From Callorhinchus milii (Eukaryota), in contig NW_024704771.1 of NCBI RefSeq assembly GCF_018977255.1, positions 682,001 through 746,000 on the forward strand: a stretch of 64,000 nucleotides of DNA. The letters run 5' to 3'. This document shows, one piece after another, positions 374-62,615 of this stretch; positions within the stretch are counted from its first letter, which is position 1, and each line of letters begins with the position of its first letter. Under the pieces are notes generated by a model, which did not search any database, was not told where the DNA came from, and saw nothing but the letters and a program-made list of their open reading frames with translations. The position numbers and the translations under genes are program-made.

Positions 374-3300
374 CTTTGTAGCACATAAACACGTAGGTTT
401 GATTGCAGTAATTATCAAACCATTGACCATTGCTCATAGCGACACATATTACGCTCTTGAGGTAATCATAAGGCTCCATAATTTTCCAGTTTGTATAATT
501 GACCTTGTCTCCATTTGTCCACATCCAATGTTGATCGGATCCCTTATGATTGTACATCCCAATCCAGAAAGGCACTGATCTGTCAATCAGCTCAAAGATA
601 GCCTTGTTCTCCTCTGGATCCCGAATACTGATAAGATCTGTGTAATGACTTCGGCAGAAATCCCATGCTTGAGTCCAGTTTTTCGTTTGGAGGATTGGAT
701 GATATTCTCTATCCTTTCGTTTATTCATCGAAGGTTCATCTGATGATAAATCACATCAGGAAATAAATTCAAGCTTCAGTTGTTTGAGTTGTTCAAGGTG
801 GATCCAATCTAAGATCCTTACCAACAAATCCCTTCCAGTCTCACAACTCCCCATTGATACAAATTCTGCCTTCTCTAATCTCTATCTGTAAGTCTATCTT
901 AAAATATAACTGTTTAAATAGTATATTTTATGAACATCTTTTAATCGTGAATTCTCAATGAAAAGTGATATACAAGCGTAATTTATATTGACTATTGAAT
1001 TCCATTATCAACGTGACTGGAACAAGAAAGAATGTTTTACGTGGAAAACCTGTCAAAATTAATAGCAACACTCATGCAGTATTTTTTACTGTATGGGCCT
1101 TCTTTGTCCAAATCATTCTTGTGATATTGATATCTTGTTCCTAAGAGAGTAACACTTTACCCGCTGCAGAATAATTTTGAGAGACGTAAGAGCTCAAAGT
1201 TGCAGGTGGAGTTTTTTCTGTTTCAAAAATGATTGGGGTTTGTGGAGACGAGGATGCAATCAAAGGCATTTGAAGGTCTGTGGAGACAGAAGAAACATCA
1301 TGTGGCGCTATTGATATGGCATTGGCATTGCTATACATCTGGCATTAAGATTTTATACCCCACTCATATCAAACTCGCATTGAACTCAGAAACAATACCT
1401 TGAAAGGTATGCTCCCTGTCTTGATTCTCAGACTTGTGCAAATAGCTTCATTTCCCTCTTGATACTCAAATAACTCTTCCAACGCAAATCCTTCTCCTAG
1501 CTTCTCCTTTACATGGGTTGATGATACTGCCTAAAGGAAATAACTTCCAGAGCCTCAGTGCATGTATGTCTCTTTCACCACCTTTGAAACCATCATGAAA
1601 GACTACAACAGGTTGTCAAGAAGGTTGGTTGATGCCAGGATACTGGGACTCATTTTAAAAAACAGTTAATTCTGTAATGGGAAGATGGTAAGTTTAGGTA
1701 TTCTGGAAAAATGAGCTCAGGTGGACAACGTATTTTATCAGCTCCATGGTTGACCTCTGGGTAAAGGTTCTATTGCCAACATTAAAGGAAACCAAAAAAT
1801 AATGTTTTAAAAAAGAAATGTGAAAATAGCTCTGATTTTACGATGCTGGAAAAGGAAAGCACAAAATTATGCTAAACCCTCTTCCCAATCTTACCTTTCT
1901 GGCATATAAATTGGTACGTTTGATTGCAGAAATCGTCAAACCACAGCCCTTTGCTCACAGCCACACAAACTGGAGAACTTAGGTATCCATTTGGCTCCAT
2001 ATATTTCCAGTGTGAATAATTTAGTCGTTCTTCGTTTGTCCACATCCAGTTCGTTCTGGAGCCCTTTTTATTGTACAGCCCAATCCAGAGAGGTACATTG
2101 CTGTCAAACTTCTGAGAAATGAACATGTCGTCCTCATAGCTCTGGATGCTGATCAGATTCGTATAGTGAATGCGGCAATAAATCAGGGCTTCAGTCCAGT
2201 TTTTCTCTTGAGCAATCAGGTAATACATCCTGTTCACTGATTTATTGTTCACTGCAGGATGTGATGGAAAGCATGAGACAAAGATTGAAACTACAGTGGA
2301 ATTCGAGCAAAGGTGAATCTGATGTAAGACCCCACTCCTTACTTCAAACCCTAACCAATTTGACCACTGCCTTATCCATGCAATGTTCCGACTTTAATAA
2401 TAATAATAATCCTTGCATTTGACATGATGCTTTGCATGTCTTCTCGACGTCTCAAAGCGCTTCACAGAACAGACTGTAAACTGAATTGACTGTATATTTG
2501 TGGGTGAAACACGGCAGCCTATTGCGCGCAGCAGTGTCCCACAAACAGTCGTGGATTAAAATGTCCAACTTATTATTTTTTTTGAGGGATTATTATCAGG
2601 AGTAAGGAAACTTGCCCAAGGTTTCGCCCTGCCGGGAATCGAACCCAGGTCTCTCGCTTGCGAAACAAGTGCTCTAACCACTGAGCTACAGGAATCCACA
2701 ATCTCCATAATCTCCAGCCCATCCGCGTCACTTTTCTGATGTGATCTTCTGCATCATGATCACTCTTTCTTCCCACTCTCAGTGACACATCCCTGTGCTA
2801 TTCTGCCCTTATCCAATTGAACCTTCCCAACAGTTACCGAATTTTTCAGTTAAGAATTTTCTGCAAATATTGTGCCAACTCGCTACTTGAAAATAAGTTG
2901 TTACCTGATTCTGGGTTATTTTGAGAGTCGAAATGTCTAAAAGTTGTGAGGAAATCTTTTCCTTTTGCGAAATCGTTTATGGATTTCGGAGGTTTGGCTG
3001 ATGGTTTGCTGGGAGTTGTAGATATCTGAAAGTCTGTGGAAACAGAGAGAATATAATGCGTCCTTAACTGGTTGGGTAGCAGGAACGAAAGAGAGAGAGA
3101 GACAGAGACACGGAGAGAGAGAGAATGAACGGATAAACGATTGGATGGAAAAAGGAAGGAAAAAAGCCTGACATAAAATACTGCAGATGCTGGAAATCTG
3201 CAATAAAAGCAGAAGTCGCTGGGAACACTCAGAGCGTCAGGCAGTATCTAGAAAGCAAAGTGAGCCAATGTTTCGGGTCCACGGCCTGATGAAGGAAGGA

Positions 3301-25127: not shown

Positions 25128-28100
25128 GTCACATTCTCACCATTGCGCCTGTTATAATTCTTGTAAATTCGCAGGAAGGAACGTCTAAATTTGCCACAGT
25201 GGAAAAGAAAAAATATCACAAAAGGGTTCGGGATCAGAAATCATCGGTGAGTTTTAGCCCAACTCAGTGTGTGTGTGTGTGTGTGTGTGTGTGAGCCCGG
25301 CTCAGTGTGTATCAGCCCGGCTCAGTGTGTATCAGCCCGGCTCAGTGTGTATCAGCCCGGCTCAGTGTGTATCAGCCCGGCTCAGTGTGTATCAGCCCGG
25401 CTCAGTGTGTATCAGCCCGGCTCAGTGTGTATCAGCCCGGCTCAGTGTGTATCAGCCCGGCTCAGTGTGTATCAGCCCGGCTCAGTGTGTATCAGCCCGG
25501 CTCAGTCACTTTCTCCTTGGAGCTGAACTGGCTCCAAGGTGACATGTTTGGCAACGGATGTCCGAATGGAGCCAGACCTCTGTGACAGTTTCTAGTCTGG
25601 TTCCTGGGCCAGGCCGGGCCACAGGATCCCAGGGCACTCACTGCTGCTGACAGCCCGGCCCGGCCCGGCCCGGCTCATCGGCAGGACCTGGAAGTGCCGA
25701 CCAGTCACTTCAATTATTCAATCCACTATCGTGCACACAGACCACGTAGACCTTTTGCCCCGGGGCAAAGGCTCAAGCGTATTGTGATTCCTGCTTTACT
25801 CAGGAACTGGGCAATTTCGACCACCCGATAGCGTGTTTGACTGTTACTTGTTAGTTATCAGTGGGTGACAGCGTATCCTCCTTCCTCCCCGAGGCCAGCG
25901 ATTGCCTGACTCCCTACCAACCTGCCCGCTCCCTCTGTTCGGCGGGCCCCGGGCTGCTCCATGTCTCCCGCCCGACCCGCCCAAACCATCGGTGGCCGGG
26001 CTTTCAGCCTCTCCGCCCCCACACTCTGGAACTGCATCCCACGGTCCCTTGGCCTCGCTTCCTCCCTTTGCCTCCTTCAAGGCCGGTCTCAAGATCCTTC
26101 TCTTCGACCGCGCCTTTGGTCTCCCTCCCACCTCCGTGCCTTCCCTCCCCCCTACCCCACCCCTGCCCCACGCTCGGTCCCCGACCCCTGACTGTCCAGC
26201 GCCTTGGGACGTCCTCCCGACGCGAAAGGCGCTCTATAAATGTCATTTTGCTGTTGTTGTTGTTTCAATCTTTTCATGCTGACCGCTGCCTCTTAACTGA
26301 GGGAAACACCTTCATGTTATTAACCGATGTTTCGGGTACAAAACGGTGTTATTTGCCATTTTGGTTCACGTGAGCAAGAGATTAACAACTTAACGTTTGA
26401 GATTGGATTATAAATTTCACGGCATAGATCATATTCTAACGTGACTGACACTCTGTGTTACAGGGCACGGTTCCTTATCTCGGCACTTTCCTCACTGACC
26501 TGGTAATGTTGGACACAGCGGTGAAAGACTACACTGAGGTAACTCCTCTCTATCACTCTCCCACCTCCGTCTCTCCCTCTCTCTCTCAGTCTCTCCATCT
26601 CTCGGTCAGACTCTCCCTCTCCGTCTCGCCCCCTCTCTCTCTCTATCAATCTCTCCCCCTCCGTCTCACTCTCTCTCTATCAGTCTCTCCCTCTCCCCCT
26701 CTCTCCCTCCATCTCGACCTCTCTCTTTAATAGCCTCGCCTTCCATTTCGCCCTCTCTCTCTATCAGTCTCTCCTCCTCTCTTTCAGTCATGCCCTCTCG
26801 CCATCAGTCACTCCTCCTCTCCATCAATCTCTATCCCTCCGCCTCTCCTTCTCTGTCTCATTCTCTCTCTATCCGTCTCTCCCTCCATTTTGCCCTCTCT
26901 CTATCAGTCTCTATCCCTCTCTATCAGTCTCTCCCTCCATCTCTCCTTCCTCTATGGAGGGGTAGAGACTGATAGAGAGGGGGAGAGACTGACAAATTAT
27001 TATTATTCGTCAGTCCCTCCCCCTCTCTATCAGTCTCTACCCCTCCATTTCACCCCTCTCCCTCCGGCTCTCCCTCTCTATCAGTCTCTCCCTCTCCGCC
27101 TTTGCCCATCGCTGTAATGTTAGTTACACACTCGACCTGGCGGTGCAGCTATTCCACGGATCCGTTTTCTTGTGTTCTTATGGATAGTTTTCTTCCAGGA
27201 AATAATATTATGGGATATAGTTTGGGACATATGTGCAGGCGACAACCAGGAAGGTGGAAGGGGAAACAGTTGGACCTTTTTTGGCCTCGCACTTCTTATG
27301 TTCTTATGATGAACTGGCTCCCTATCACACACTAAACTCCTACCCCCATCACAAAGTTCTCGCCAGGCTCCACCGGCTCCCCATCGCACACACTTATCTC
27401 CATTCCCCCATCACCCCAGTTAATGTTATCTCTCTTATCTTTTTTCTCTTTCTTCCAAGGATGGATTAATTAATTTTGACAAACACAGAAAGGTAACTAT
27501 TGCCTCTGAATTCTGACTCTGTCCTCTCTCACCTCGTGCTGGGGTGGGGTGGGGTGGGGTGGCGGGGGTGTGTTGGGGCTGAGCGCTGTGTGGTACCTCT
27601 CCCCTCTTCCTATGCCTTCATGCCCTCGCACCTCCCTACCTCTCCGACCTGCTTACTCCCCGACTCACTACCCGCAAGCTCTGCTCAACCTGTCTCTCAT
27701 ACCCCTCCATTCCACCATTGGTGGCCACACTTTCACACACATTAAACTCCATACCCCCATCAGCCCAGTCCTTGCCAGACTCCACTGGCTCTCTATCACA
27801 CACTAAACTCCTACCTCCATCACCATATTTCTCGTCAGGCTCCACTGCCTCCCCATCACACACTAAACTCTGTATCCCCATCACCACAGTCCTCTCCAGG
27901 CTCCACTTGCTGCCTATCACACATTAAACTCCGTACCCCCCATTCTTACTGTCCTGTTCTGTTGTGTCGGTGACCTTAGGAGTTTGAGATCATTGCCCAG
28001 ATTAAGCTGTTGCAGTCCGCGTGTAAAAATTACGCAATCGAGAAAGACCCTGAGTTCCTGGCCTGGTTTTACTGGCTCCAATCTCTGAGTGAGACAGAGA

Positions 28101-30840: not shown

Positions 30841-30874
<34 letters not shown>

Positions 30875-36685: not shown

Positions 36686-36869
36686 CACCCACTCCCTGGT
36701 CACAATGGCTGTTGCCAACCTCCTGGTCATATTCACTGGGCTGATATACCATTCCCGCCTTTAGTCTGAAATGGGTCTGAAATGCTGTACTCTGTCCAGC
36801 ACCTTGGGATGTTCTCCCGACGTGAAAGGCGCTATACAAATGTAATCTTGTTGTTGTTGTTTAGGGCCT

Positions 36870-37340: not shown

Positions 37341-38001
37341 AAATGTTCTGGTATCTCATTGAAATAATAATAATCCCTCGATTGGATCAAGAGCTCTTCA
37401 AGTTGGAAGATGCCTGTTATTGTTTCACAAGATATTCTGTACAATTAGATATCATTCACTCAATCCAGATCATTAATGTTTTAGATTAAAATAAAGACAT
37501 TCTAACACCCTGAAGTGTTACACACTCCACAAATAATACAGATATTCTTTAATTCCCACTGGTACGTTGCTCTTTTCTCCTTTTCAGCTGTTCCATTAGC
37601 TATGATTTTGACGGTTACATTATCAAACGCCATTTTTAAATCCAAATACGCCGCTGAGAACATGAGGAGAGAGAATTGGAATACTTGGAATTGGCTCTCA
37701 CCAATACTTCCCTAAAATTAAGTTAACAGGTTGCATGTTTACCTCATTTCCAGATACAGGAGCAATTAAGTAGTTACATACATCTGTGAAACCCTTTCTC
37801 TGATTTCAATACCCTGAAGCATGGAAACAGACAGACTCCAGATGACCAGAATAAATGAATGAACACAATATATCTCATTAAAAGCGGATAGGAACCTTGG
37901 CTTTATAAATAGAGGCAGAGAGTACAAAAGCAATAAAAAATGGCTGGTTAGGGTCTCAGCTGGAGTATTGTGTCCAATTCTGGGCACCACACTTTAGGAA
38001 A

Positions 38002-40459
38002 TATGTCAGGGCCCTTGGAGAAGGTGCAGCGGAGATTTACACCAATGACACCAGGGACAACAACAACCACAAAACTACATTTGTATCGCGTTGGCAGGAT
38101 GTTGGGAGGATGACCCAAGGTGCTGGACAATCAGTGTTTGGGACACGAGCTGGCGGCCAAAGACAAAGCCCTGAGGGATGCCACACGTGATTGTGCGGCG
38201 GCTGAAGGAGAAGCCGTTAATGGGGACACGTTGGAGACGGTGCGAGAGGTAGGATTCGAACCAGTCAAGGGCACATCCGCAAAGATTGAGCTGAGAGGAG
38301 AGGTGGTGTTGGAAGATAGAACTAGACAGGGTTCTGGTTGCAATAATCCGTGCATTTGATATAGTGCTTTATCATGTATTCGAGATGTCGCAATGCACTT
38401 CACAGAATATACTGTACTTGACTATATTTTGTGAGTGAAACGCAGCAGCCAATTGCACACGGCAGTGTCCCACTGGATTGAGGACCCAAATTATTATTAT
38501 TATTATTTTTAAGGGATCATTACCTGCTAGAAAAGTCATCCGCCAATCGAGTAATAACCGGATTCCTACTGAATATTAGGTAAATAGAGGCTTTTGGAGT
38601 AAGGAAATTTGACCAAAGTTTGGCCCTGCGCAGGAATCAAAACCCAGGTCCTCTCGCTTGTGATGCAAGTTCTCTAATCACTGAGCTACAGCACTCAAGA
38701 TGAAGTCTATTAAATTGCATTGCAGATATGTAAACAAGACTGTACACCTGCTCGACTGCCATTGACCTGCAAGGTAGTGAGGTCAGTTGTAGAACTGATT
38801 GTAGGTTTGAGCTAAATCCCCAAAGTCCAACAGGAGACCTCAATTTGTGAGCTGTCACCATCAGAAACAGCCCCAAACGAGCAGCCCACGGACACTGATT
38901 TGGCAAATGAGCTCCGGGATCTGAGGTGTCTTCTAGGTTGTGTTGTGAGTAACCGCCCCATGCCGGGAACTAGGGTCTGACCCGCTAACTCGCTGGTAAT
39001 AAACAGCAGGACAGACTGATAGATGATAAACTTACCTGCGAGACTGGAGTTCCCTGTAAAGTCTATCTCAGGAGTGGCTGTCGGTGCTGCTGTGTTGGGA
39101 GGCAGGAAGCTGCAAGATGAAGGAGGATAGTATATGCTCTGGAGAGGGACAGGTGGATCTGAAAGACCAGGATTGGGAATGAACCAGAGAATTTGAAGTC
39201 ACAGGCGAGTTCCATAACCACCATCGGAAACACTGCTCCTACTAGGCAGCCCATGGGCACTGACCTGGCTCTGAGTGGGATGTGGGCTCGGTTGTTGGGC
39301 TACGTGCCGGAGTGAAAGTGTCGCTGTGGATGTGGGTGGTTTCAGAAGCTGCAATGGATGGGAGCTGCTGTTGGTGTCTTTCGCCCTGTAAATAAACATG
39401 TGGGAGTTACTGGTCCGAGCACACAACAGGTAGACACTGCTGAGATCACACCAGATTCTGTCATGTGAGCCACACATTCAATAACTGTGTAGCATACGAA
39501 AGGGAATGTGTGATGACATCAAGTATCACACATCAGGCTCAGCCTCTGTAAGATAGTTCACAAGGACACAAGACTGATTTGCAATTGTATTCATTCGGAT
39601 TCACACACACCTCCCCAATGTGTTCAAATGATGTTGTTTCCACTTGACCGTTTCCAGCCGCTCTCATTCTGTTCATTTACAGCCCGATCCAGACCCATTG
39701 ATTGTCAATAAATGGGGGATAAGTGAGACTAACATAACGTAACATGTAGGAGCAGGAGGTGGCCATTCGGCCCTTCGAGCCTGCCCCGCCATTCAATCAT
39801 GGCTGATCTGCTAATCTAACTCCAGCTAATAACCTGACACTGCCTTATCCCCATATCCCTTAATCCCCTTTTGCAGTAAGAAATCTATTGATCTCAGTCT
39901 TGACTATGTTCAAGGACTGAGCGTCAACAGCCCTTTGGGGAAGTGAGTTCCATACATTCACTGCCCTTTGTGTGAAGAAGTTCTTCCTCAACTCAGTGCG
40001 AAAGGGTTGGCCTCTGATTTTAAGGTTGTGACCCCTGGTTTAGTTTCTCCAACCGGGGGACACAATCTCCCACTATCTACTCTATCTGCCCTTTGATGAT
40101 CTTATAGGTTTCTATTAGATCCCCTCTAATTCTTCTATATTCTAGAGAATATAGGCCCAAATTGTTCAGCCTATCCTCGTAACTCATCCCCTTCATCCCT
40201 GGTACTAACCCAGTAAATCTACGCTGCGCCCCCTCCGAGGCAAGTACATCCTTCCTTAAATGAGAAGACCAAAACTGCCCAGTATTCCAGGTGTGGTCTC
40301 ACCAGAGCCCTATACAGTGGCAGCAACACTTCCCTACTCTTATACTCTAATCCTTTCATAATGAACGCTAACATACCGTTCCCTTCCTAATTGCTGCTGC
40401 ACCTGCAGACTAACTTTCTGTGACTGGTGTACAAGGACACCCGAGTCCCTCTGGACACT
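38002..40459 (+). repeat. Inverted duplication 2, left arm (partner 47402-49854)
   Basis: Near-identical reverse complement; the ORF track shows the same peptides mirrored (38637/48951, 39063/48597, 39199/48380). Confidence 0.95.
39730..40459 (-). mobile_element. CR1 LINE 3' end (inside the duplicated arm)
   Basis: Reverse complement of 47402-48125; encodes the [14 protein letters not shown]-type CR1 C-terminus. Confidence 0.85.
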
Positions 40460-41739
40460 TAGAGCTAAAGAGCACTGCCCCAGAGGGCGCTGACACCAGC
40501 AGTGTGCTGCTCTCATTCTACGCCGCCGATGACATCTACAACGCGGAGGAAACAGTGCTGTACTAACGTCCAGGGACAGACGGCTGATTGTATTTCCACC
40601 GGACGGCGCTGAGCCGTGTGAAGAGGGCAATGGAGAGCATCGCACTGATGCCCTGTGTTAACATGACCGGCAGCGACCGGCGCAAACCGCTGGTCATCGG
40701 GAAGAGCCAGTGCCCTCACTGTATGAAGGGGGTCGATCTCACTGTTCTAACCATCACCTATAAGGCCAACAAGATGGTGTGGATGATGAGAGGGATCTTT
40801 AAGGAGTGGCTGACACAGTGGGACACAGAGCTGGTCGAGCAGGGGCGTAAGATACTTGTTTTTGTGGACAGCGCACCATGTCACCTGCCCATTCCAACCC
40901 TCGAGAACATCTGCCTGGAGATGTTCCCCCTGGACACCACTCTGATCGAGCCCATGGGTCAAGGGATCATCCGAAACCTGAAGCTCTCCTACTGCAAGGA
41001 GCTATGAAAGTGCCTCCTGGACGCCATCGATGGCAGCGTGATCAGCCCCCACACCACTGTGGGAGAGGTGGTGAGACACATCAGCCTCTGGATGCCATCG
41101 GCATGGTTGCCATTGCCTGGGAGAGCAGGAAGCCTGTGATCATGTCCGACTGCTTCACAAAGGCCGGGTTTGTGACTGGTGACGCTGCTCCCTGCACTGA
41201 GGCTGAGGGGAGGACAAGCGCAGAGGCCGAGGGCGAGAGGCAGATCACTGACCAGTTCCTGGACATTGATGCTGATCTACTCTACCGTGATCCCCAGGAC
41301 CAGGAGGCCATCGTGGCTGAAGCTGTGGTCGCCGAGCGGCCGCTAGTCGTGAACGACAGCGACAGCAACTCTGAGGAGAACGAGGCCCCATCTGTGATGG
41401 CCGGCACAGCTCTGACTGGCCTGCGAGAGGCAGAAAGCTTCGTACTAAAGAGCGGACTCTATGACAAGTGTTAGAATGCACTTCATGACATCATTGTGAG
41501 CAGCAGAGAGAGACGTCACACTGTTCTTGTGCAGTCCGACTTGAGAGAAGTTTTCAATAAAATAGGTTCAATTTCCTCCTGACGTGAAAGCCGCTGTACA
41601 AATGTAGTTTGTTGCTGCAGTAATTGGATGAAAAAACGGGTGAGATTTAATGCATTGAAACCAGTTAACTTCAGGGCCCCTCTTAATTCGGACAAAATGC
41701 CCGGCCCTGGCGTGTCCGTCTTAAGTGGCTTCCACTGTA
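40460..41739 (+). mobile_element. Tigger/pogo DNA transposon, 5'-truncated, with a right terminal inverted repeat-like end
   Basis: DIYNAEET, NMTGSDRRKPLVIGKS, YKANKMVWM..GIFKEWL, RKILVFVDSAPCHL and IEPMGQGIIRNLK (DDE_1 motifs), with frameshifts. The terminus ...GTGTCCGTCTTAAGTGGCTTCCACTG is followed by TA (41738-41739). The left TIR is not seen. Confidence 0.85.
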
Positions 41740-46790: not shown

Positions 46791-48125
46791 CAATATAATT
46801 TGGCCGAGTCAACACGGCTTTACAAAAGGGAAGTCATGTTTGACAAATCTCAGAGAGTTTTTGAGGGCATTTCCAGTAAACTGGATATGGGTGAATCAGT
46901 GGATGTGGTCTTTTAGGACCTCCAGAAGGCATTCGATAAGGCGCCGCATAAAAGGTTAGTCCAAAAGATAAGGGCCCATGGAATTGGGGACCATATTAAC
47001 GTGGATTGGGGAATGGTTAACGGGTCGGAAACACAGATTAGGAATAAACGGGTCCTTTTCGGATTGGTGGGATGTGACGAGTGGAGTGCCACAAGGATCA
47101 GTCCCTGGGCCTCAGCTATTTACCATCTACACCAACGATCTGATGAGGACATCGAAGTTAATATATCTAAATTCGCGGATGACACAAAACAAAACGAGGA
47201 GGAAGTGTCAACACAGAGGATGACATTAAAAACGATGCAGCGAGACATAGAGAGGTGAGGTGACTGGGCAGGTAGGTGCCGATGAAGTATAATGTAGGGA
47301 AGTGCGAAGTCATCCGCCTCGATAGCAAAAACAGTAGAGTGGGTTATTTTTAGAAGGGGAGAGATTGGAATGTGTCNNNNNNNNNNNNNNNNNNNNNNNN
47401 NAGTGTCCAGAGGGACTCGGGTGTCCTTGTACACCAGTCACAGAAAGTTAGTCTGCAGGTGCAGCAGCAATTAGGAAGGGAACGGTATGTTAGCGTTCAT
47501 TATGAAAGGATTAGAGTATAAGAGTAGGGAAGTGTTGCTGCCACTGTATAGGGCCTGGTGAGACCACACCTGGAATACTGGGGCAGTTTTGGTCTTCTCA
47601 TTTAAGGAAGGATGTACTTGCCTCGGAGGGTGCAGCGTAGATTTACTGGTTAGTACCAGGGATGAAGGGGATGAGTTACGAGGATAGGCTGAACAATTTG
47701 GGCCTATATTCTCTAGAATATAGAAGAATTAGAGGGGATCTATAGAAACCTATAAGATCATCAAAGGGCAGATAGAGTAGATAGTGGGAGATTGTGTCCC
47801 CCGGTTGGAGAAACTAAAACCAGGGTCACAACCTTAAAATCAGAGGCCAACCCTTTCGCACTGAGTTGAGGAAGAACTTCTTCACACAAAGGGCAGTGAA
47901 TGTATGGAACTCACTTCCCCAAAGGGCTGTTGACGCTCAGTCCTTGAACATAGTCAAGACTGAGATCAATAGATTTCTTACTGCAAAAGGGGATTAAGGG
48001 ATATGGGGATAAGGCAGTGTCAGGTTATTAGCTGGAGTTAGATTAGCAGATCAGCCATGATTGAATGGCGGGGCAGGCTCGAAGGGCCGAATGGCCACCT
48101 CCTGCTCCTACATGTTACGTTATGT
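46790..48125 (+). mobile_element. CR1 LINE RT/3' portion spanning the 25-N gap
   Basis: [32 protein letters not shown] and ISKFADDTK. The copy at 56.6 kb reads GGAATGTGTC-AGTGTCCAG with no intervening bases, so the gap is probably zero-length. Confidence 0.9.
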
Positions 48126-49854
48126 TAGTCTCACTTATCCCCCATTTATTGACAATCAATGGGTCTGGATCGGGCTGTAAATGAACAGAATGAGAGCGGC
48201 TGGAAACGGTCAAGTGGAAACAACATCATTTGAACACATTGGGGAGGTGTGTGTGAATCCGAATGAATACAATTGCAAATCAGTCTTGTGTCCTTGTGAA
48301 CTATCTTACAGAGGCTGAGCCTGATGTGTGATACTTGATGTCATCACACATTCCCTTTCGTATGCTACACAGTTATTGAATGTGTGGCTCACATGACAGA
48401 ATCTGGTGTGATCTCAGCAGTGTCTACCTGTTGTGTGCTCGGACCAGTAACTCCCACATGTTTATTTACAGGGCGAAAGACACCAACAGCAGCTCCCATC
48501 CATTGCAGCTTCTGAAACCACCCACATCCACAGCGACACTTTCACTCCGGCACGTAGCCCAACAACCGAGCCCACATCCCACTCAGAGCCAGGTCAGTGC
48601 CCATGGGCTGCCTAGTAGGAGCAGTGTTTCCGATGGTGGTTATGGAACTCGCCTGTGACTTCAAATTCTCTGGTTCATTCCCAATCCTGGTCTTTCAGAT
48701 CCACCTGTCCCTCTCCAGAGCATATACTATCCTCCTTCATCTTGCAGCTTCCTGCCTCCCAACACAGCAGCACCGACAGCCACTCCTGAGATAGACTTTA
48801 CAGGGAACTCCAGTCTCGCAGGTAAGTTTATCATCTATCAGTCTGTCCTGCTGTTTATTACCAGCGAGTTAGCGGGTCAGACCCTAGTTCCCGGCATGGG
48901 GCGGTTACTCACAACACAACCTAGAAGACACCTCAGATCCCGGAGCTCATTTGCCAAATCAGTGTCCGTGGGCTGCTCGTTTGGGGCTGTTTCTGATGGT
49001 GACAGCTCACAAATTGAGGTCTCCTGTTGGACTTTGGGGATTTAGCTCAAACCTACAATCAGTTCTACAACTGACCTCACTACCTTGCAGGTCAATGGCA
49101 GTCGAGCAGGTGTACAGTCTTGTTTACATATCTGCAATGCAATTTAATAGACTTCATCTTGAGTGCTGTAGCTCAGTGATTAGAGAACTTGCATCACAAG
49201 CGAGAGGACCTGGGTTTTGATTCCTGCGCAGGGCCAAACTTTGGTCAAATTTCCTTACTCCAAAAGCCTCTATTTACCTAATATTCAGTAGGAATCCGGT
49301 TATTACTCGATTGGCGGATGACTTTTCTAGCAGGTAATGATCCCTTAAAAATAATAATAATAATAATTTGGGTCCTCAATCCAGTGGGACACTGCCGTGT
49401 GCAATTGGCTGCTGCGTTTCACTCACAAAATATAGTCAAGTACAGTATATTCTGTGAAGTGCATTGCGACATCTCGAATACATGATAAAGCACTATATCA
49501 AATGCACGGATTATTGCAACCAGAACCCTGTCTAGTTCTATCTTCCAACACCACCTCTCCTCTCAGCTCAATCTTTGCGGATGTGCCCTTGACTGGTTCG
49601 AATCCTACCTCTCGCACCGTCTCCAACGTGTCCCCATTAACGGCTTCTCCTTCAGCCGCCGCACAATCACGTGTGGCATCCCTCAGGGCTTTGTCTTTGG
49701 CCCCAGCTCGTGTCCCAAACACTGATTGTCCAGCACCTTGGGTCATCCTCCCAACATCCTGCCAACGCGATACAAATGTAGTTTTGTGGTTGTTGTTGTC
49801 CCTGGTGTCATTGGTGTAAATCTCCGCTGCACCTTCTCCAAGGGCCCTGACATA
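47402..49854 (-). repeat. Inverted duplication 2, right arm
   Basis: Reverse complement of 38002-40459 with several single-base deletions. Confidence 0.95.
48472..48821 (+). other. Candidate orphan S/T/P-rich exons 48472-48592 and 48699-48821 (mirrored on the minus strand at about 39385-39036)
   Basis: TTTATTTACAG|...GAGCCAG|GTCAGT and TCTTTCAG|...CTCGCAG|GTAAGT; phases 0-1 and 1-1, stop-free, separated by a 106-nt intron. Confidence 0.35.
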
Positions 49855-49957: not shown

Positions 49958-50373
49958 GACAACGTGAAATCCTCTTTAGCTTCTCTCACACAGAGGAAGG
50001 CCACTGCTCTCAGAGCTGAAGTTAAACAGAAACAAAAGATTTCACAAGTGAAGGTAAGTTGTGTCGGGGCTGATGTCTGGGCTCTCAGTCGTGTGTCTCT
50101 CTTTACTGTGCGCAGTGTGATGTCTGACACTTCATTTTGCAGCAACAGGCGAACAGTCTGGAGAACCACGTCACGGCACAGTTTGCTAAAATGTGCCATA
50201 GCCTCACTGACAGAGAGCAGCGTGTAATCCGAGAGCTCAGAGAGCGAGAGGAGGAGATTTTACACCAAATGGAGAATAATCTGTGACAGATTCAGGACAA
50301 GTTAGATTCTACAAAACATAATCTGTCAGAGTTACAGAAACAGATGGAAAAAGACACACTCACCTTTCTGCAG
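49958..50373 (+). pseudogene. TRIM (B30.2-class) coiled-coil exons 49958-50053 (96 nt) and 50143-50373 (231 nt) with an in-frame stop
   Basis: DNVKSSLASLTQRK...QKQKISQVK | QQANSLENHVTAQFAKM...REQRVIRELREREEEIL..MENNL*QIQDKL. The 96/231-nt phase-0 exon pair is typical of class IV TRIMs. TGA at 50284-50286. No RING/B-box exon was seen. Confidence 0.8.
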
Positions 50374-50959
50374 GTAAAGAGATTAAATTATAATGGAGTT
50401 CAGTAACAGTTACACACAGTCTGGAGCAGAAAGTCAAAGTCTGACTGTTAAACAGCCCAGAGATTTTATTGATTATTTGGTATTTTCTGATGGCGACTCT
50501 GCTGCTGTCACTCAGTACAGAATTGAACCCACATCAGTCACTCCAGGCCTGCGGTGTCCCTGCAAAGCCAACATCCAGGACACGTCAGCTGTGGTTATCC
50601 TGGGATCAACATTTATTCATCTGTGGGAGAATTTATCATTTACCATCTATTACAGTGTATCCTCTTACTGTTCTATTACTGTTATCTACAGTTGAGTACA
50701 GATACATCTGTCTATCTGTCTATCTGTGACCAGGGCTCCCTCTGCTCCTCATCCTCCTCGACCTCTCTGCTGCCTTTGATATACCATAGACCACTCCATC
50801 CTCCTCACCGCCTCTCCTCTCACCTCAACTTTAAGGTCCCCTCAAGGATAGAATTCAAATCCTTGTCCTCACTTTCAAGGCCCTCCTCGGCCTTGTCCCC
50901 TCCTACATCTCTGACCTGTTGACCCACCACCAACCTGTCCGCTCCCTCCATTCAGCTGC

Positions 50960-53125: not shown

Positions 53126-53219
53126 GATCAGATGAAGGAAATTTCTCAGAAAACGATGTGTTTTAACAAACCCGGAAATTAAGCAGTTGCTGTTTTTGCT
53201 GCGGAACTGAAGGTAACTG

Positions 53220-54018
53220 TGAGGAGTGACCAGACAGCAATGTGAGGAGTCACCAGACAGCAATGTGAGGAGTGACCAGGCCAGACGGCAATGTGAGGAG
53301 TGACCGGGCCAGACAGCAATGTGAGGAGTGACTGGGCCAGACAGCAATGTGAGGAGTGACCGGGCCAGACAGCAATGTGAGGAGTGACCGGGCCAGACAG
53401 CAATGTGAGAGTGACCGGGCCAGACAGCAGTGTGAGGAGTGACCAGGCCAGACAGCAATGTGAGGAGTGACCAGGCCAGACAGCATGAGGTTGACCGGCC
53501 AGACCAATGTGAGGAGTGACCGGCCAGACAGCAATGTGAGGAGTGACCGGGCCAGACAGCAATGTGAGGAGTGACCGGGCCAGACAGCAATGTGAGGAGT
53601 GACCAGGCCAGACAGCAATGTGAGGAGTGACCGGGCCAGACAGCAATGTGAGGAGTGACCGGGCCAGACAGCAATGTGAGGAGTGACCAGGCCAGACAGC
53701 AATGTGAGGAGTGACCGGGCCAGACAGCAATGTGAGGAGTGACCGGGCCAGACAGCAATGTGAGGAGTGACCGGGCCAGACAGCAATGTGAGGAGTGACC
53801 GGGCCAGACAGCAATGTGAGGAGTGACCGGGCCAGACAGCAATGTGAGGAGTGACCGGGCCAGACAGCAATGTGAGGAGTGACCGGGACAGACAGCAATG
53901 TGAGGAGTGACCGGGCCAGACAGCAATGTGAGGAGTGACCAGGCCAGACGGCAATGTGAGGAGTGACCGGGCCAGACGGCAATGTGAGGAGTGACCAGGC
54001 CAGACAGCAATGTGAGGA
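53220..54018. repeat. 28-nt minisatellite GAGGAGTGACC(G/A)GGCCAGACAGCAATGT (about 28 copies)
   Basis: 28-nt period, which gives the 28-aa periodicity in the minus-strand ORFs. Confidence 0.95.
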
Positions 54019-54298
54019 GCTGCTGTCAACATCAACACTGAACATCACAGGACTTTTCCCCACTTTATATTGTGGGGAATATTTGAGCTGCACTTTCCCT
54101 GTTTGTGGGGCTATAACCAGATTCCCACAGAAACCGAAACCTCTGGACATCGCCATTCCGGACACACGATTAATTTACTGTTAACAGTGAAGATTCTTCT
54201 CTTTCAGAACAAAGCCTCAACAGTCAGTGTCGAAAATTGTTATTTTACCCTTAAAATAACGCCTTAACTTTACTGCGATTCCAGTTACAGGATTCACT

Positions 54299-54312
54299 GG
54301 TTTCACTTTCAC
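54299..54312. promoter_or_regulatory. ISRE/IRF-element-like motif upstream of butyrophilin
   Basis: GGTTTCACTTTCAC fits RGTTTCNNTTTC (reverse strand GAAAGTGAAACC), about 510 nt before the BTN ATG. Confidence 0.5.
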
Positions 54313-54824: not shown

Positions 54825-57800
54825 ATGAGCTGCAAACACTGTATTCAGGTCCTGTGGCTTGTGCTTCCCCTCTCACTGACTGGTAAGGAAACACATTGAA
54901 TCTGTTTGATTTCTGTTGGTGCTAAATTGCTGAAGATAAAGGTAAATGATGTGCACAATCTGGTTGCCGCCTTTCCTCCACAAAATACAGTCAGAGCGCT
55001 TTACAGTATATCCTATGAAGATTTTGAGACTTCTCAGCGATGTGATAATCATAGAATAATCAGAAAATCATAGAATTATACAGTACGAAAGGAGGCCATT
55101 CAGCCCAGCGGGCCAACTCTTTTAAAAGTGCTATCCAAATCAATCCCAATCCCTCGCTCTCTCCCCATAGCGCCGCAAACTTGTCCTTCCCAAATAATTA
55201 TTTATAAGGTGCTATATCAAATGTAAGGATTATTATTGTTATCTCAGCGACGGAGTTTGTCTGAGTCAATGACTGAAAATCCTAACTGTATCCATTGTTT
55301 GTTATTAAGCAGAGAGATTCACAGTCAGTGGCCCGGCCCTCCCTGTCCCAGCCATTGCTGGTTCAGATGTTGTCCTGGACTGTAAGTGTTCCATAGACCT
55401 GCCACGAGAGGGTGTGGAGGTGAGATGGTTCAGGACAAGATACGACTCCCCTGTGCACTTATACAAGGAGGGACGACAGCAACTGGAAACACAGGATGAA
55501 GCCTACAGACACAGAACACAACTGTTTGTAGAGGAGTTTATCAACGGCGATGTGTCTCTCAGACTGGGAGATGTGCGGGTGTCAGATAACGGAGAGTACA
55601 CATGTTTGGTTAGATACGCCCGATTGTATGAAGAGGCAGAGATAGAGTTGAAAGTTATAGGTCAGTAATGTTTATAATTCATTTTACTTCATGTAATCTG
55701 TGTGTACAAACATTCATTTATTTGTTAATGTTATGTTCAAAATGCAATACTTTATATAAACAAGAACAAGTTTTCATTGGTGTAAATGTATTCAGAATGT
55801 TGTGGCCTTCAGTAAAGTTACTGCTCTGTAATGTCCGGGTATTAATATTGTCTGATTCACGTCTCCTGTCTTCCAGGCCTTGGCAGTCAGCCTTGGATTC
55901 ACGTTGATGGGCAGCACAGTGATGGTGTGAGGCTGCGGTGTGAATCCAGTGGATGGTTCCCAGCACCAGAGGTTCTGTGGTTTGATGATCAGGGAAACAA
56001 CTTAACAACACTCAGTAACTGGACGGTCAGAGAGGATTCTAAAGGTCTCTTCAGTGTTAAAGGCCAAATAGAAATAATCTATTCAACCAACAAGATCAGG
56101 TGTCTGATTCACAATGAAGAAAATGAACAAGAAGGAAAACTCCAAATCTCAGGTCAGTAAATACACTGAATTATTAACAATAGTCTGATAGATATGATGC
56201 AGATTTGGAGTTCTACAGAATTGGGGCAGAAATATGGAGTTAACCGATTACAGAGATAGGGAGAAGCAGGACCATGGAGGGCTTTGGAGGCAGTGAATCT
56301 TCTTATTACAAACTGAAATGACCGCAGTACTCCAGCTCACCCACCCTTCCTGCTAACCTACTTAAGCTGCTGATTACATTGTGAATGAATCAATACTTCA
56401 TAACTCACAGCCAACATTGCTTCAGAAAAGGCAAATGTTGCTGATCCACCTCACAGTGAAGGGAAGACTCCAAGTTAAGAGCTGAGAAGCTACAGGACAA
56501 CAACAACAAATGAAATGGGGGCAAATAAAGCTATTTGTGTTTGACATCCAATTTGACATCCATTTGTGTTTGACATCTTCCTCGGTAGCAAAAACAGTAG
56601 AGCGGGTTATTTTTTAGAAGGGGAGAGATTGGAATGTGTCAGTGTCCAGAGGGACTCGGGTGTCCTTGTACACCAGTCACAGAAAGTCAGTCTGCAGGTG
56701 CAGCAGCAATTAGGAAGGGGAACGGTGTGTTAGCATTCAGTATGAAAGGATTAGAGTATAAGAGTAGGGAAGTGTTGCTGCCACTGTATAGGGCTCTGGT
56801 GAGACCACACCTGGAATACTGGGGGCAGTTTTGGTCTTCTCATTTAAGGGAGGATGTACTTGCCTCGGAGGGGTGCAGCGTAGATTTACTGGGTTAGTAC
56901 CAGGGATGAAGGGGATGAGTTACGAGGAGAGGCTGAACAATTTGGGCCTCTATTCTGTGGAATATAGAAGAATTAGAGGGGATCTTACAGAAACCTATAA
57001 GATCATCAAAGGGCAGATAGAGTAGATAGTGGGAGATTGTGTCCCCGGTTGGAGAAACTAAAACCAGGGTCACAACCTTAAAATCAGAGGCAGCCCTTTC
57101 GCACTGAGTTGAGGAAGAACTTCGTCACTCAAAGGGCAGTGAATGTATGGAACTCACTGTCTCAAAGGCCTGTTGACGCTCAGTCCTTGAACATATTCAA
57201 GACTGAGATGGATAGATTTCTTCTTGCAAAAGGTATTAAGGGATATGGGGATAAGGCAGCGTCAGGTTATTATGTGGAGTTAGATTAGCAGATCAGCCAT
57301 GATTGAATGGCAGGGCAGGCTCGAAGGGCCGATTGGCCTCCTCCTGCTCCTACATGTTATGTTATGACATCAGAATAGATGTTTAAATGTCTATTTACAT
57401 TCCTTGACAGACGAGTTCTTTCCCAAAGTGCCAGTGGGTTTGGTGGTTTCCGCACTGCTCTTAGGACTTGCCATATTGGTGCTGAGTGTTCTTGTCCCCT
57501 ACAGTGTAAAACAGCGCCGAGAGATCAAAGGTACGTTCCCATCAGTAACATCTCCCATCACAACACTGTTACTGTTTGTGTAAGAATGTGCAAGTTCTAT
57601 AAAACAATTGGTCCCTCCCTTCACTCAGTGACCCCCGGCCTGTTTCATGTCACCGCCTGATCCTCCCTCCCCACCATCAGCAGCTCAGGCTTTCAGCCTC
57701 TCTGCCCCCACTCTCTGCAACTCAAGCCAAGAATCCTTCCGATTCGCCCCCTCCCTCCGCCCCCTCCATCACCTCTTTCAAGGCCTGTCCCATGACCTTC

Positions 57801-60800
57801 CTCATTCTGCATTTTCAGTTAATTTTACCCTCTCACCCGTTCCCCCCCACCCCAACCCCAGCTCAGACCCCAGCTCAGACCCCAGCTCAGCCCCCAGCTC
57901 AGACCCCAGCTCAGATCCCAGCTCAGACCCCAGCTCAGACCCCAGCTCAGATCCCAGCTCAGATCCCAGCTCAGATCCCAGCTCAGACTCCAGCTCAGAC
58001 CCCGGCTCAGACCCCAGCTCAGACCTCAGTTCAGACCCCAGCTCAGATCCCAGCTCAGACCCCTTCTCAGATCCCAGCTCAGACCCCAGGTCAGCCCCCA
58101 GCTCAGATCCCAGCTCAGATCCCAGCTCAGACCCCAGTCAGCATTCTGAGGGCTTTGGGATATCTCCCGCTGTGGAAGGTGCTGTGTAAATGTAAATGTT
58201 ATTGTAATTCAAACCTCCTGTAATTGTGTTGAGCTGCACTTTGTGTAGTTTCTAACTGTTAATGTTGTAAACATGTAGACTGAGCATTAAACAATACTGG
58301 ATTCAGGAGCGGTTTCTAACAGTTTTGTTTTGTATCCTCCAGATCTTGAGAAGAGAGTGGGTAAGTCATCAAAATAAAATAACGATTTCACGTTGTGATT
58401 AACCTCATTCACAAGCTTCACACAAAGCAGACATAGTTCATAGAATCATAGAATTGAACAGCACAAAAAAGAGGGCATTCGGCCCATAGAGTCTGTGTCG
58501 GCTCTTTGAAAAGAGCAATGTAATGTCAGTCCCACTCTCCAGCCCTTTCCCCATAACCTGCAAACCCGTCCTCCTCAAATATCATCCATCGCGTTTTTAA
58601 AAGCTGTTATCGTATCGGCCTCGACTGCCATCTCAGGCAATGCATTCCAGATTCGAACAACTCGCTGCGTGAAAACATTTCTTCTCACCTCCCCTCGGCT
58701 TCTTTTAGAGACTATTTTAAATCTGTGAACTCGAGTCACCGACACCCACCAGTGGGAACAGTTTTTCCCTTTCTAACCTATCAAATCCCCTCATGATATT
58801 GAAGACCTCTATTAGGTCCTCGTAACCTTCTCTGCTCCAATGAGAATAATCCTAACCTCTCCAGCCTTTCCTCATAATCAAGGTCCCTCATTCCTGGTAC
58901 CATCCTCGTAAATCTCCTCTGCACTCTTTCCAATGCCTTAACATCCTTCCTATAGTGCGGTGCCCAGAACTGGGCGCAGTATTCTAACTGAGGCCTAACC
59001 AGTGTTTATATAGGTTAATCATAACCTTCTGACTCGTGTACTCTATGCCCCTATTTATAAAGCCTAGTATCCCATATGCCCTTTTTACAGCCTTATCTCC
59101 CTGTCCTGCTACCTTCAAGGATTCATTTACTTGCACCCCCCGGTCTATCTGTTCATTTATCCCCTTAAGATTGTATGACCAGCCTATATGGCCTCCCCTC
59201 ATTCTTTCCACCAAAATGCAATACCTCACATTTCTCCACATTAAAATTCATCTGCCATGTGTCGCCCATTTTACCATTCTGTCTGTGTCTTCCTGCAGTT
59301 GGCTCCTATCCTTCTCACTGTTTACCTAACTTTGTGTCGTCCGCAAACTTGGAAATGGTGCTTGCTATACCCAAGTCCAGATCACTTATGTTATAGTTTG
59401 CCAACAAAATACACAGTCACTACACTCTCCAGTAAATCCTGCGAAATGCTTTTGAGGAGCCAAATCTATTTCAAGGATTATTATTATAGAATAACAACAA
59501 CTTGCACTTGTATAGTGCCCTCCACGCAGGATGGCACCTCAGATCGCTGAACAGAGACAGAGCGTGATCCTGAGCCGGGCCGGGGGGGGAGTTGGTGGGA
59601 GCTGACTATAAGCACAGTCGAAAAGAAAGGTTTTCAGGTGGGACTTGAAAAGGGGGAGAGAGAGGACAAGGCGGAGGGTTTGAGGGAGAGTGTTCCAGAG
59701 TTTTGGGGCGTAGTGGCTGAACGCACGATTTCCAATGGTGGAGCGGAGGGCAGTAGACAGGGAAGTAGACAGGTGTATGAGGGATAGAGACTTGAAGGGG
59801 TTAATGATAGGGCGGGGCAGCTGTTGTTAACACTTTGCTCTGAGAGCCCATATAGACTCGATGGTGAATGGCCTCCTTCTGGGCTGTAAATTTCAATGAT
59901 TCTATTCCATGAATTATTACAGAGTGTTTAACTCCAAACATTGGTCTGTTTCACAGCTTCAACTTTCCCTTTTCTTCCCTCAGACAACATTGGTTTGTGA
60001 ACACACACACATTGAGGGGTCAACGAGTGAGGGAGTGTGAGAGGGAGGGAGGGAGTGTGAGAGGGAGGCAGAGAAGGAAGGAGTGAGTTAGGGAGGGAAG
60101 GAAATGAGTGATGGGGGGAGGGAGTGAGAAGGGGGAGGGAGAGATAGAGAGAGGGATGGAGGAAGGGAGGGAGGAGGAGGTAAAGAGAGAGGGCAGGATG
60201 GAAAGGAGGAGGGAGAGAGAGAGAGGAGGAAGCAGTGAGAGGGGAAAGGAATAAGTGAGAGTGGGAGGGAGTGAGTGAAAGAGGGAGCGAGAGGGAGGGA
60301 GAGGAAGGGAGGGAGGAGGAGGTAATGAGAGAAGGCGGGAGGGAAAGGAGGAGGGAATGAGAGAGGGAGGGAGGGAGGAAGTGAGAGATTGAGGGAGTGA
60401 GAGAGGGAGAGCGAGAGGGAGAAAATGCGAGAGAGAGGTAGGGAGTGAGAGAGAGAGGGGAAGTGACTGAGAGATGGAGGGAATGAGTTAAAGAGAGTGA
60501 GGGAGAGAAAGAGGGAGGGAGGGAAAGTGATGAGGTTTGGAGCTGCCAAACGTCTGATCACTTGTTTCTTGTTGGTTCCAGAGTTGAAAAGGATTCGTGA
60601 GTCTGCAGGTAAGAGTCTGAGTGACCGAGCAAACAACATCCAACACACTGACCCACCCCACACACTCGATCACATCACCACCACAACACACAGACCCTCA
60701 CCCCCCCGCGCATCCCACCCCCCCGCGCATTCCGCCACCCACGCATCCCCCCCAAACATCCCCCCCCACGCATCCCCCCCACACGCATACCGCCCCCTCA

Positions 60801-62615
60801 TGCATCCTTCACCACACGCATCCCCCCCCAGCATCCACACCCCACACGCATTCCCCCCCCACCCCGCGCATCCCCACCGCTGCATGCATCCCACACCCGC
60901 GCGCACCCCCCAACCGTGCGCACACCCCCGCGCGCATCTCCCGCCCCCGCGTGCATCTCCACCCCCCACCCCCGTGTGCATTCCCCCCCCGTGTGCATAC
61001 CCCCCCACGCGCATCTCCCCCCACCCGCGTGTATCCCCCACCCGCGTGTATCCCCCACTCACGCGCTTCCCCCCCGCGCGCTTCCCCAACCACGCGCATC
61101 CCCCTCGCGCATCCCCCCTCGCGCATCCCCCCCACGTGCATCCCTTCCCCACACGCACCCTCACGAACTCACCCCTCACATCCACCTTCACGACCCCCCC
61201 GCACACGCACTCTCACAACCCCCCGCACACGTACCCTCACGACCCCCCCCACTCACACCCTCACGACCCCCCCCACTCGCACCCTCACGACCACCCCCAC
61301 TCGCACCCTCACGACCCCCCCCACTCGCACCCTCACAACCCCCCCCACTCGGACCCTCACGACCCCCCCACCGCACACTAAAGAAACCACCACGCACATC
61401 CTCACGACACCCCCCACACGCACCCTCACACCACCCCACACACGCACCCTCACGATCCCTCCCCCCACTCGCATCCTCACGACACCCCCCACACGCACAC
61501 TCACGACCCTCCCACATGCACCCTCACGACCCCACCCCTCACGCAACCTCACGACCCCACCCGCAGGCACCCTCACGACCCTCCCACATGCACCCTCACG
61601 ACCCCACCCCTCACGCAACCTCACGACCCCACCCGCAGGCACCCTCACGACCCCCCCACATGCACCCTCACAACCCCCCCACACGCAACCTCACAATGCC
61701 CGCCCCACACACGCACTCTCACGATCCCCACCACACACGCACCCTCACGACCCCCCCCACACACACCCACACCCTCACGAACCCGCCCACACACCCACAC
61801 CCTCACAATCCCCCCCACACATGCACACCCTCCCATTCCCCCCCACACACATCCTCACGTCCCCCCTCACACACCCTCATGCCCCCCTCACACACCCTCA
61901 CAACCCCCCACACACACCCACACATTCCCCCCCACACGAATCCCTCCCCCACAGACACACAGACTCTCAGCCTTTTTGCGGATTCTGTTCCCAGGAGATG
62001 TCGATGTTTTACACAAAGGCTTCTCTCCCGGTGACGACGCTGAAGATCATCTTATTTATGATTGTAAATGTATACGACAATAATGGTCTGATTCTCCCTC
62101 CAGTTACAGTCACTCTGGATCCTGACACAGCCCATCGTCAGCTCATCCTGTCTGAGGACCTGACCAGTGTGAGACACGGAGACGAAGAGCAGCCGCTCCC
62201 TGACTCCCCGAAGAGGTTTAGTAACTATCCCATTGTCCTGGGATCTGAGGGCTTCACATCGGGGAGACATTACTGGGAGGTGCAGGTGGGCAACAAGAGA
62301 GAGTGGATTGTGGGATTGGCCGCAGAGTCTGTCAACAGGAAACAACCAATCACTTGGTCACCACAGGGTGGGGTCTGGGGGGTGTGGCTGAGGGCTGGGG
62401 TCTATGATGCTCTGACGTCACCCCCCACCCGCCTGCCCCTGACAGTGAGACCCGGGAAGGTCGGGGTTTACATGGACTATGAGGGGGGACAGGTGTCATT
62501 TTACAACGCTCACAACATGGCTCATCTCCACACTTTCACCCAAACTTTCACTGAGAAACTTTATCCTCTGTTCAGTCCCAGGTTTGGTTCTGAGCCTCTG
62601 ACAATCTGTCGGTGA
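54825..62615 (+). CDS. Butyrophilin-family protein, apparently complete. Exons: 54825-54882 (signal), 55313-55660 (IgV), 55877-56152 (IgC), 57411-57530 (TM), 58343-58360 (heptad-type), possible 59984-59992, 60582-60608, 62104-62615 (B30.2/PRY-SPRY)
   Basis: Signal [19 protein letters not shown]; 348-nt IgV ([29 protein letters not shown]); IgC ([15 protein letters not shown]); DEFFPKV plus a hydrophobic TM; ELKRIRESA; VTLDPDTAH...[12 protein letters not shown]...[17 protein letters not shown]...LYPLFSP. All introns are GT-AG phase 1 and there are no in-frame stops. Confidence 0.92.
56580..57365 (+). mobile_element. CR1 LINE 3' end in the BTN IgC-TM intron
   Basis: [27 protein letters not shown]; very similar to 47315-48125 but with different flanks. 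Confidence 0.9.
57855..58140. repeat. 12-nt minisatellite CCCAGCTCAGA(C/T)
   Basis: Direct tandem repeat. Confidence 0.9.
58440..59350 (-). mobile_element. CR1 LINE 3' portion
   Basis: [18 protein letters not shown] on the minus strand, and a CR1-type tail near 58440-58520. Confidence 0.85.
60640..61960. repeat. C/A-rich minisatellite in the last BTN intron
   Basis: CACCCTCACGACCCCCCC-type units; source of the spurious N-terminal extension of ORF 60621-62615. Confidence 0.9.

Follow-up and report, generated by a model that had tools for sequence, protein, structure and literature searches.

The 64,000 nucleotides considered here (the window) correspond to approximately positions 682,001-746,000 of MU249860.1, an unplaced scaffold of 4,116,489 bp in assembly GCA_018977255.1 of the elephant shark Callorhinchus milii, a holocephalan. 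The window carries an orthologue of the RalGEF gene RGL2, a complete butyrophilin (BTN) gene, a TRIM-type remnant, a lectin gene with multiple C-type lectin-like domains (CTLDs) and a gene related to kyphoscoliosis peptidase (KY), and the question is whether this assemblage, above all RGL2 next to BTN, belongs to the holocephalan major histocompatibility complex (MHC). A first-pass annotation, made from the bare sequence, had proposed these genes and a cartilaginous-fish origin. Pfam supports every gene element that it named, each at its place, and the origin is confirmed by the C. milii BTN model P0121, which agrees with the window gene at 100% on all exons. The window has a GC content of 50.7% and a CpG observed/expected ratio of 0.53, and it is interrupted by ten runs of N.

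The RGL2 orthologue can be followed over 13 exons (Table 1), all of which are open and joined by canonical GT-AG junctions, and its stop codon aligns to the C-terminus of the orthologues. The exons share 57-90% identity with those of sharks. In the concatenated exons, the CDC25-type RasGEF catalytic domain is recognized with an E-value of 5.6e-47 (Pfam RasGEF), and the final three exons (32741-35067) encode the C-terminal Ras-association domain (Pfam RA, E 2.9e-12). Of the N-terminal REM domain (RasGEF_N), just the last ~50 residues are readable, in the exon at 18381-18533. This exon is directly interrupted by the gap at 18534-18694, within which the ~36 residues absent from it could fit. Profile positions 1-166 have no match in any of the six frames of the window when searched with a profile built from 18 orthologues. 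In a maximum-likelihood tree of 35 sequences, the window RalGEF falls inside the RGL2 clade (support 100/99), separate from RALGDS and RGL1, so that the first-pass identification as RGL2 holds. The sequence is sister to all 12 shark and ray orthologues (95/86), which is the position expected of a holocephalan RGL2. Among the further protein-database matches are proteins named RGL2 from lungfish, amphibians, sturgeon and gar. No C. milii RGL2 protein is among the matches in the database searched, and the gene therefore appears to be unannotated. RGL2 of the window appears to be the one orthologue of C. milii, with a gene model that is new to the current annotation. In the literature searched, no mention of RGL2 together with Callorhinchus was found.

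The BTN gene downstream of RGL2 had been called full in the first pass, and rightly so: signal peptide, IgV, IgC, transmembrane (TM) segment and B30.2 (PRY+SPRY) are united in one gene. It is an existing NCBI model, P0121, located at MU249860.1:736825-744615 and identical to the window gene exon by exon. With butyrophilins of the BTN1A1/BTN2/BTN3 type (IgV-IgC-TM-B30.2), it shares all domains, cytoplasmic exons that are short and of heptad type, the B30.2 exon and its NCBI name; it differs in being one of at least 12 C. milii paralogues on a single scaffold, and its identity to tetrapod BTNs is 38-46%. The BTN array on MU249860.1 starts with the window gene, with the nearest downstream paralogue 24.6 kb away, and paralogues are found at 0.74, 0.77, 1.95, 2.35 and 3.67 Mb. 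A profile scan of the window gave no further B30.2 or Ig matches beyond this gene. Immediately upstream of the B30.2 exon, and open in-frame with it, lies a low-complexity stretch of ~490 codons rich in proline, threonine and histidine (60621-62100), which is intronic in the NCBI model. Elsewhere on the scaffold (3,660,427-3,689,489 and 2,339,681-2,375,715), the neighbours of BTN paralogues are a galectin gene (157 aa) and a 909-aa product that is unnamed and has no Pfam match.

Between RGL2 and BTN, the coiled-coil exons of a TRIM gene had been reported. What stands of this claim is one weak stretch, which scores 16.5 bits against Pfam TRIM_CC (E 0.0077; cut-off 30) and has the coiled coil of TRIM69 as its best family match (structure 4NQJ, E 8.9e-4 over 72 residues). 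The stretch contains an in-frame stop, and NCBI has no gene call at 50128-50403. Of the other parts of a class IV TRIM (RING-B-box-coiled coil-B30.2), RING (C3HC4) and B-box2 patterns are absent from all six frames of the whole window, and no B30.2 exon belongs to the TRIM piece, the sole B30.2 match of the window being the BTN exon. The stretch is probably a pseudogene fragment.

At the left end of the window, the three modules of the multi-CTLD lectin are each encoded by a single exon (Pfam Lectin_C, E 1e-20 to 1.6e-18). All exons are of phase 1-1 with AG|GTAAG donors, and the exon copies are mutually 63-69% identical at the DNA level. The nearest solved structures are those of the mannose-receptor family (FcRY, PLA2R, LY75, MRC2 and MRC1). 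As to the Ca2+/sugar-binding motifs, EPN is present in two of the three modules and EPY in the third, and WFD replaces WND in all three, so that sugar binding is not assured. Ricin-type Cys-rich and FNII domains were not recognized when the open reading frames (ORFs) of 4.3-6.3 kb were read by eye, without a domain-profile scan.

The KY-like gene, to which the UniProt C. milii model P0241 maps, is truncated at its 5' end. It shares with the KY family a transglutaminase-like core and a C-terminal Ig-like KY domain (Pfam Ig-like_KY, PF23265, E 5.5e-18); of the transglutaminase triad, the His (EHIWN) and the Asp (LIDSCWG) are in place and align with those of Anolis KY, to residues 256-679 of which the protein is ~30% identical. 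It differs from the family in this low identity, in its Cys-bearing N-terminal half, which lies outside the readable sequence (KY profile positions 1-266, including the Cys-bearing part of the triad, have no match in the window), and in its location, since KY of the white shark maps to a chromosome of 274 Mb and not to chr19. Among 1.84 billion representatives searched, relatives show about 30% identity and none exceeds ~35%; the 20 representative clusters closest to the window protein consist of KY or KY-like proteins, with amphibians, coelacanth, mouse, lungfish, teleosts and amphioxus as their sources. A word-based search for relatives was dominated by low-complexity words and gave three matches. 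The gene looks like a divergent, fast-evolving, lineage-specific KY paralogue. A single gene comprising KY-like and lectin exons was considered and ruled out, as the KY frame stops exactly where KY proteins end. The last KY-like exon lies in a GC-rich (~60%) region (6288-7423) with ORFs longer than 320 codons that overlap in three frames across both strands, one frame alone matching the KY family. A single difference from UniProt P0241, CRKQPGRAGD in the window (~6690) and CRKQPGQAGD in the model, reflects an allele or the assembly version.

Table 1. Coordinates of the features of the window (window positions) and of the published RGL-like genes of elasmobranchs (chromosome positions).
Feature	Coordinates	Strand	Remarks
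RGL2 orthologue	18381-35067	+	13 exons, profile positions 167-770: end of REM, CDC25/RasGEF, RA, stop
RGL2 exons 1-7	18381-18533 (cut by gap at 18534), ~20996-21049, 22324-22539, 23275-23378, 23658-23742, 25175-25246, 26464-26538	+	tblastn and hidden Markov model (HMM) mapping
RGL2 exons 8-13	27460-27492, 27980-28101, 30615-30707, ~32741-33002, 34096-34210, 34919-35067	+	tblastn and HMM mapping
BTN	54825-62615	+	Complete: signal peptide, V-set, BTN Ig-C (C2-set_3), TM, PRY/SPRY (Pfam)
BTN exons	54825-54883, 55311-55661 (IgV), 55877-56152 (IgC), 57410-57530 (TM), 58342-58362, 60581-60607, 62102-62615 (B30.2)	+	NCBI model P0121
TRIM-type coiled-coil remnant (pseudo-exon)	50128-50403 (276 nt)	+	In-frame TGA at 50284-50286
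Multi-CTLD C-type lectin gene	374-4303	-	Single-exon CTLD modules 3938-4303, 1895-2251, 374-739; 3' end past window start
KY-like (kyphoscoliosis-peptidase family) gene, 5'-truncated	6380-10690	-	Pfam, UniProt model P0241
KY-like exons	10465-10690 (transglutaminase-core part), 8563-8748, 6380-7285 (Ig-like KY domain; stop 6377-6379)	-	Pfam, tblastn
Inverted duplication 1	Arms 9492-11007 and 14995-16508 (~1.5 kb)		Each aligned block 100% identical
Inverted duplication 2	Arms 38002-40459 and 47402-49854 (~2.4 kb)		Aligned blocks 98-100% identical
White shark RGL-like	chr19, 88.47-88.64 Mb		Between two C4 genes (PMC10751288)
Catshark RGL-like	chr13, 30.56-30.74 Mb		Between C4B/NCR3 and C4C (PMC10751288)
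Sawfish RGL-like	chr34, 12.13-12.24 Mb		C4 fragments and TRIM69-like on one side, MHC-Ib on the other (PMC10751288)

The remainder of the window consists of transposon debris (pogo DDE_1, reverse transcriptase (RT) of long interspersed nuclear elements (LINEs) and tRNA-Ala-like heads of short interspersed nuclear elements (SINEs)) and of large simple-repeat arrays. CA/CTCT-type arrays of ~2 kb (50.9-53.1 kb) are followed by a minisatellite of 28-bp period (53139-54131) with ~35 copies, many of them 98-100% identical, which makes long spurious minus-strand ORFs. The six tRNA-like matches (2628-2692, 7678-7740, 9957-10015, 15986-16044, 22827-22884 and 36357-36419), two of which are tRNA-Ala according to ARAGORN, are heads of tRNA-derived SINEs with a recurrent 14-residue peptide motif and not tRNA genes. 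A hydrophobic ORF at 36770-37360, resembling a G-protein-coupled receptor, was suspected to be a GPR139-like fragment because the sawfish MHC is rich in such genes; it has no Pfam match, and the candidate was dropped.

In human, RGL2 resides in the extended class II region, between PFDN6 (HKE2) and TAPBP (PMC1309616). In their supplement, Veríssimo et al. (MBE, 2023) list an 'RGL-like' gene on the MHC chromosome in each of three elasmobranchs, white shark, catshark and sawfish; the reedfish rgl2 has a tapasin-like gene on one side and a zbtb22-like gene on the other, with a PLA2R-like multi-CTLD gene nearby (PMC10751288). This framework gene thus has orthologues within the MHC of three sister lineages, white shark, catshark and sawfish, and its reedfish orthologue adjoins tapasin. 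Elasmobranch BTNs are likewise MHC-syntenic (PMC10751288, PMC12841164); sawfish chr34 has BTN genes close to atf6b (1.35-1.59 Mb) and, in addition, an MRC1-like gene (PMC10751288). RGL2 and BTN occupy the same chromosome in seven other species, Heptranchias, Heterodontus, Scyliorhinus, Mustelus, Stegostoma, Hemiscyllium and Microcaecilia, as judged, independently of the published maps, from base-identical lengths of the chromosomes of the protein matches. Taken with the published maps, this shared location means that the mix of families in the window matches the known MHC chromosomes of cartilaginous fish. The synteny comparison called for in the first pass hence comes out in favour of linkage at the chromosome level, with RGL2 orthologues within the elasmobranch MHC and BTNs on the same chromosome.

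The local arrangement is another matter. The window and the elasmobranch RGL-like neighbourhood (PMC10751288) have in common the orthologous RalGEF, a TRIM69-type gene just past its 3' end in sawfish, and BTN genes along with a multi-CTLD gene (in sawfish 'mannose receptor 1-like'), which in sawfish share the chromosome of RGL-like. They differ in several respects: (i) the RGL-like gene spans 113-182 kb in elasmobranchs and ~17 kb in the window; (ii) it is flanked by C4 and MHC-Ib, with the sawfish BTNs megabases off, whereas in the window BTN follows 20 kb downstream and the KY-like gene is placed head-to-head upstream; (iii) the window is devoid of C4 and MHC-Ib; (iv) the TRIM neighbour is a dead same-strand fragment in the window and a tail-to-tail gene in sawfish. 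The neighbours of RGL-like in white shark are LOC121291130 (head-to-head) and LOC121291271 (tail-to-tail), and those in catshark are LOC119975535 (head-to-head) and LOC119976722 (tail-to-tail). The human extended class II region (PFDN6 - RGL2 - TAPBP - ZBTB22 - DAXX) resembles the window in RGL2 orthology, and the reedfish order (tapasin-like - rgl2 - zbtb22 - pbx2 - PLA2R-like) in having a multi-CTLD gene within ~0.2-0.3 Mb of rgl2; both arrangements differ from the window, which is without TAPBP, ZBTB22, DAXX and PFDN6. Human BTN2 and BTN3 lie at the opposite end, in the extended class I region. The proposal that RGL2 and BTN preserve a compact ancestral arrangement is not upheld: the spacing is not conserved, RGL-like and BTN being ~10.5 Mb apart on sawfish chr34 according to the published table, and in the window the two are held together by one 25-N join.

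The window is best explained as the left border of the BTN array together with the C. milii RGL2, on a scaffold that is most likely a piece of the holocephalan MHC ('MHC-6'), a reading to which a probability of roughly 0.55 is given. That RGL2 borders the BTN array on its left makes it likely that the unplaced scaffold MU249860.1 is part of this MHC and resides on the MHC chromosome, and that the apparent exception of the C. milii BTNs reflects non-placement. The 'MHC-6' scaffold of C. milii was left blank by Veríssimo et al. (PMC10751288). RGL2, an MHC-linked ohnologue of the RalGDS family and a Ras-effector RalGEF without an immune role of its own, would owe this position to inherited synteny, as it does in sharks, rays, reedfish and human. 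The BTN genes, which presumably encode surface proteins of the IgV-IgC-TM-B30.2 type, the decayed TRIM69-like piece and the multi-CTLD lectin belong to families that expand and decay around the MHC in many vertebrates, and the KY-like gene would be a lineage-specific divergent paralogue.

Several observations weigh against the assignment of the scaffold to the MHC. Markers of the MHC, some of which the first pass had proposed to look for on the scaffold, did not turn up: the 64-kb window contains no B2M and no class I/II, TAP, PSMB8/9, TAPBP, C4 or BRD2 gene, and the latter set is also absent from five samples of ±10 kb around BTNs of the scaffold, in which the galectin and the 909-aa product were found. 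The terminal branch of RGL2 is long (0.69), and together with the absent 5' exons this makes a decaying or relocated copy possible. The RalGEF tree was built without RGL3, which was excluded via membership in the named RGL2 clade and the synteny of the orthologues. The junctions KY-like|RGL2 and RGL2|BTN each traverse a gap that is flanked by an inverted duplicate. Finally, the C. milii BTNs have been reported on another 'chromosome' than MHC class I (PMC12841164).

This last report, which places all C. milii BTNs on a chromosome separate from the one with MHC class I, is the starting point of the strongest alternative, namely that the block is real yet not MHC-linked in holocephalans, RGL2 and the BTN array having been translocated away from the class I/II core to another chromosome. 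The lack of MHC core genes in the window and at the sampled scaffold positions would fit such an event, as would the observation by Veríssimo et al. that the holocephalan arrangement is unlike that of elasmobranchs, for example for psmb10 and c4 (PMC10751288). MU249860.1 is unplaced, however, so that 'different chromosome' may merely mean 'not placed', and every elasmobranch examined, like the caecilian, has RGL2 and BTN in synteny with the MHC. A translocation is regarded as rather unlikely.

The assembly itself provides the basis for a second alternative. The first-pass annotation had treated some 62 kb as one contiguous segment; the gene content of this segment holds, but its contiguity is weak. 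All ten N-runs lie in or beside microsatellites or simple repeats: six gaps (11148-13673) fall within intergenic CA/CACTCA-type arrays, as detected with TRF, and four further runs are located at 14860-14884, 17257-17405, 18534-18694 and 47377-47401. No reading frame crosses the gaps at 11148-13673, and continuity there is therefore not demonstrable from the window. Inverted duplication 1 encloses simple repeats, six N-runs and the 25-N gap 14860-14884; ORF identity stretches its arms to ~11130 and 14885, the right arm beginning right after this gap. A KY exon is doubled by the duplication (tblastn: 10465-10848 on the minus strand, 15154-15540 on the plus strand). Inverted duplication 2 lies between RGL2 and BTN, and its right arm starts exactly where the 25-N gap 47377-47401 ends. 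Its loop contains a decayed pogo/Tigger DDE_1 transposase (40588-41471), split over two frames, and fragments of LINE RT (RVT_1). The 2.4-kb arms were also considered as transposon terminal repeats, an explanation that was ruled out on account of the frame shift in the enclosed transposase and of the LINE fragments mixed with it. Both inverted duplications are probably assembly artefacts, and the occurrence of a 25-N gap beside an arm in both pairs suggests a systematic artefact of scaffolding or contig orientation. In addition, the 5' ends of the head-to-head KY-like and RGL2 genes would both fall in the zone of 11.0-18.4 kb, which is occupied by simple repeats, eight N-runs and a duplicated arm and is too short and too repetitive for the absent 5' exons of the two genes. 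RGL2 from its exon at 20996 through to the stop falls, together with the left arm of duplication 2, in one gap-free stretch (18695-47376), and 47.4-64 kb forms another, so that the adjacency of RGL2 and BTN rests on one 25-N scaffold join. Given the artefact-like inverted duplications and the gaps between the genes, tight spacing and orientation are not trustworthy.

These features raise the possibility that the window is a partial assembly chimera, in which at least one junction (KY-like/lectin|RGL2 or RGL2|BTN) joins non-adjacent sequence, or in which orientation or distance is wrong. Beyond the abutment of both inverted duplications (1.5 and 2.4 kb, blocks 98-100% identical) on 25-N gaps, the N-runs in or beside microsatellites and the missing room for two sets of 5' exons, such a chimera is favoured by the decayed transposon core in the loop of the 2.4-kb pair, which speaks against young terminal repeats. 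Yet exon order and strand are consistent both in the KY-like gene (10.5 -> 8.6 -> 7.3 kb) and in RGL2 (13 exons in order), RGL2 from 20996 to its stop shares a single gap-free stretch with the left arm, the TRIM remnant 3' of RGL2 mirrors the TRIM69-like neighbour in sawfish, and many BTNs are located on the same scaffold. Misjoining of this kind is judged improbable.

MHC linkage of the genes in the window is plausible, but it is not new, as RGL, TRIM, BTN and lectin genes on the MHC chromosome of cartilaginous fish have already been published. This applies in particular to the lectin, which had been put forward as a previously unnoticed MHC member: its presence is consistent with such linkage, but multi-CTLD genes are already contained in the published MHC-chromosome tables of sawfish and reedfish. 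The same proposal for the KY-like gene fares worse. Of the 20 representative clusters checked as its closest relatives, not one lies on an RGL2/MHC chromosome, which leaves a tie of the KY-like gene to the MHC without comparative support, and its linkage in the window depends, moreover, on the doubtful KY-like|RGL2 junction. A more far-reaching picture, in which the holocephalan BTN array, RGL2, the multi-CTLD lectin and the KY-like gene make up a compact flank of the MHC that serves innate immunity, with the KY-like gene as an unnoticed lineage-specific resident and the separation of BTN from the MHC as an artefact of an unplaced scaffold, is tentative and on balance doubtful.

The new part is modest: the C. 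milii MHC, so far unassigned, probably includes the BTN scaffold. For the holocephalans, a data-poor sister group of sharks and rays, this gain is incremental. Bordering the BTN array, RGL2 provides a concrete anchor for the C. milii MHC, whose scaffold the 2023 reconstruction left unassigned. Its place beside the array further suggests that the exception recorded for C. milii in a 2026 survey, with BTNs off the MHC chromosome, is an assembly artefact, and that the synteny of BTN and MHC may be older than the split between holocephalans and elasmobranchs.

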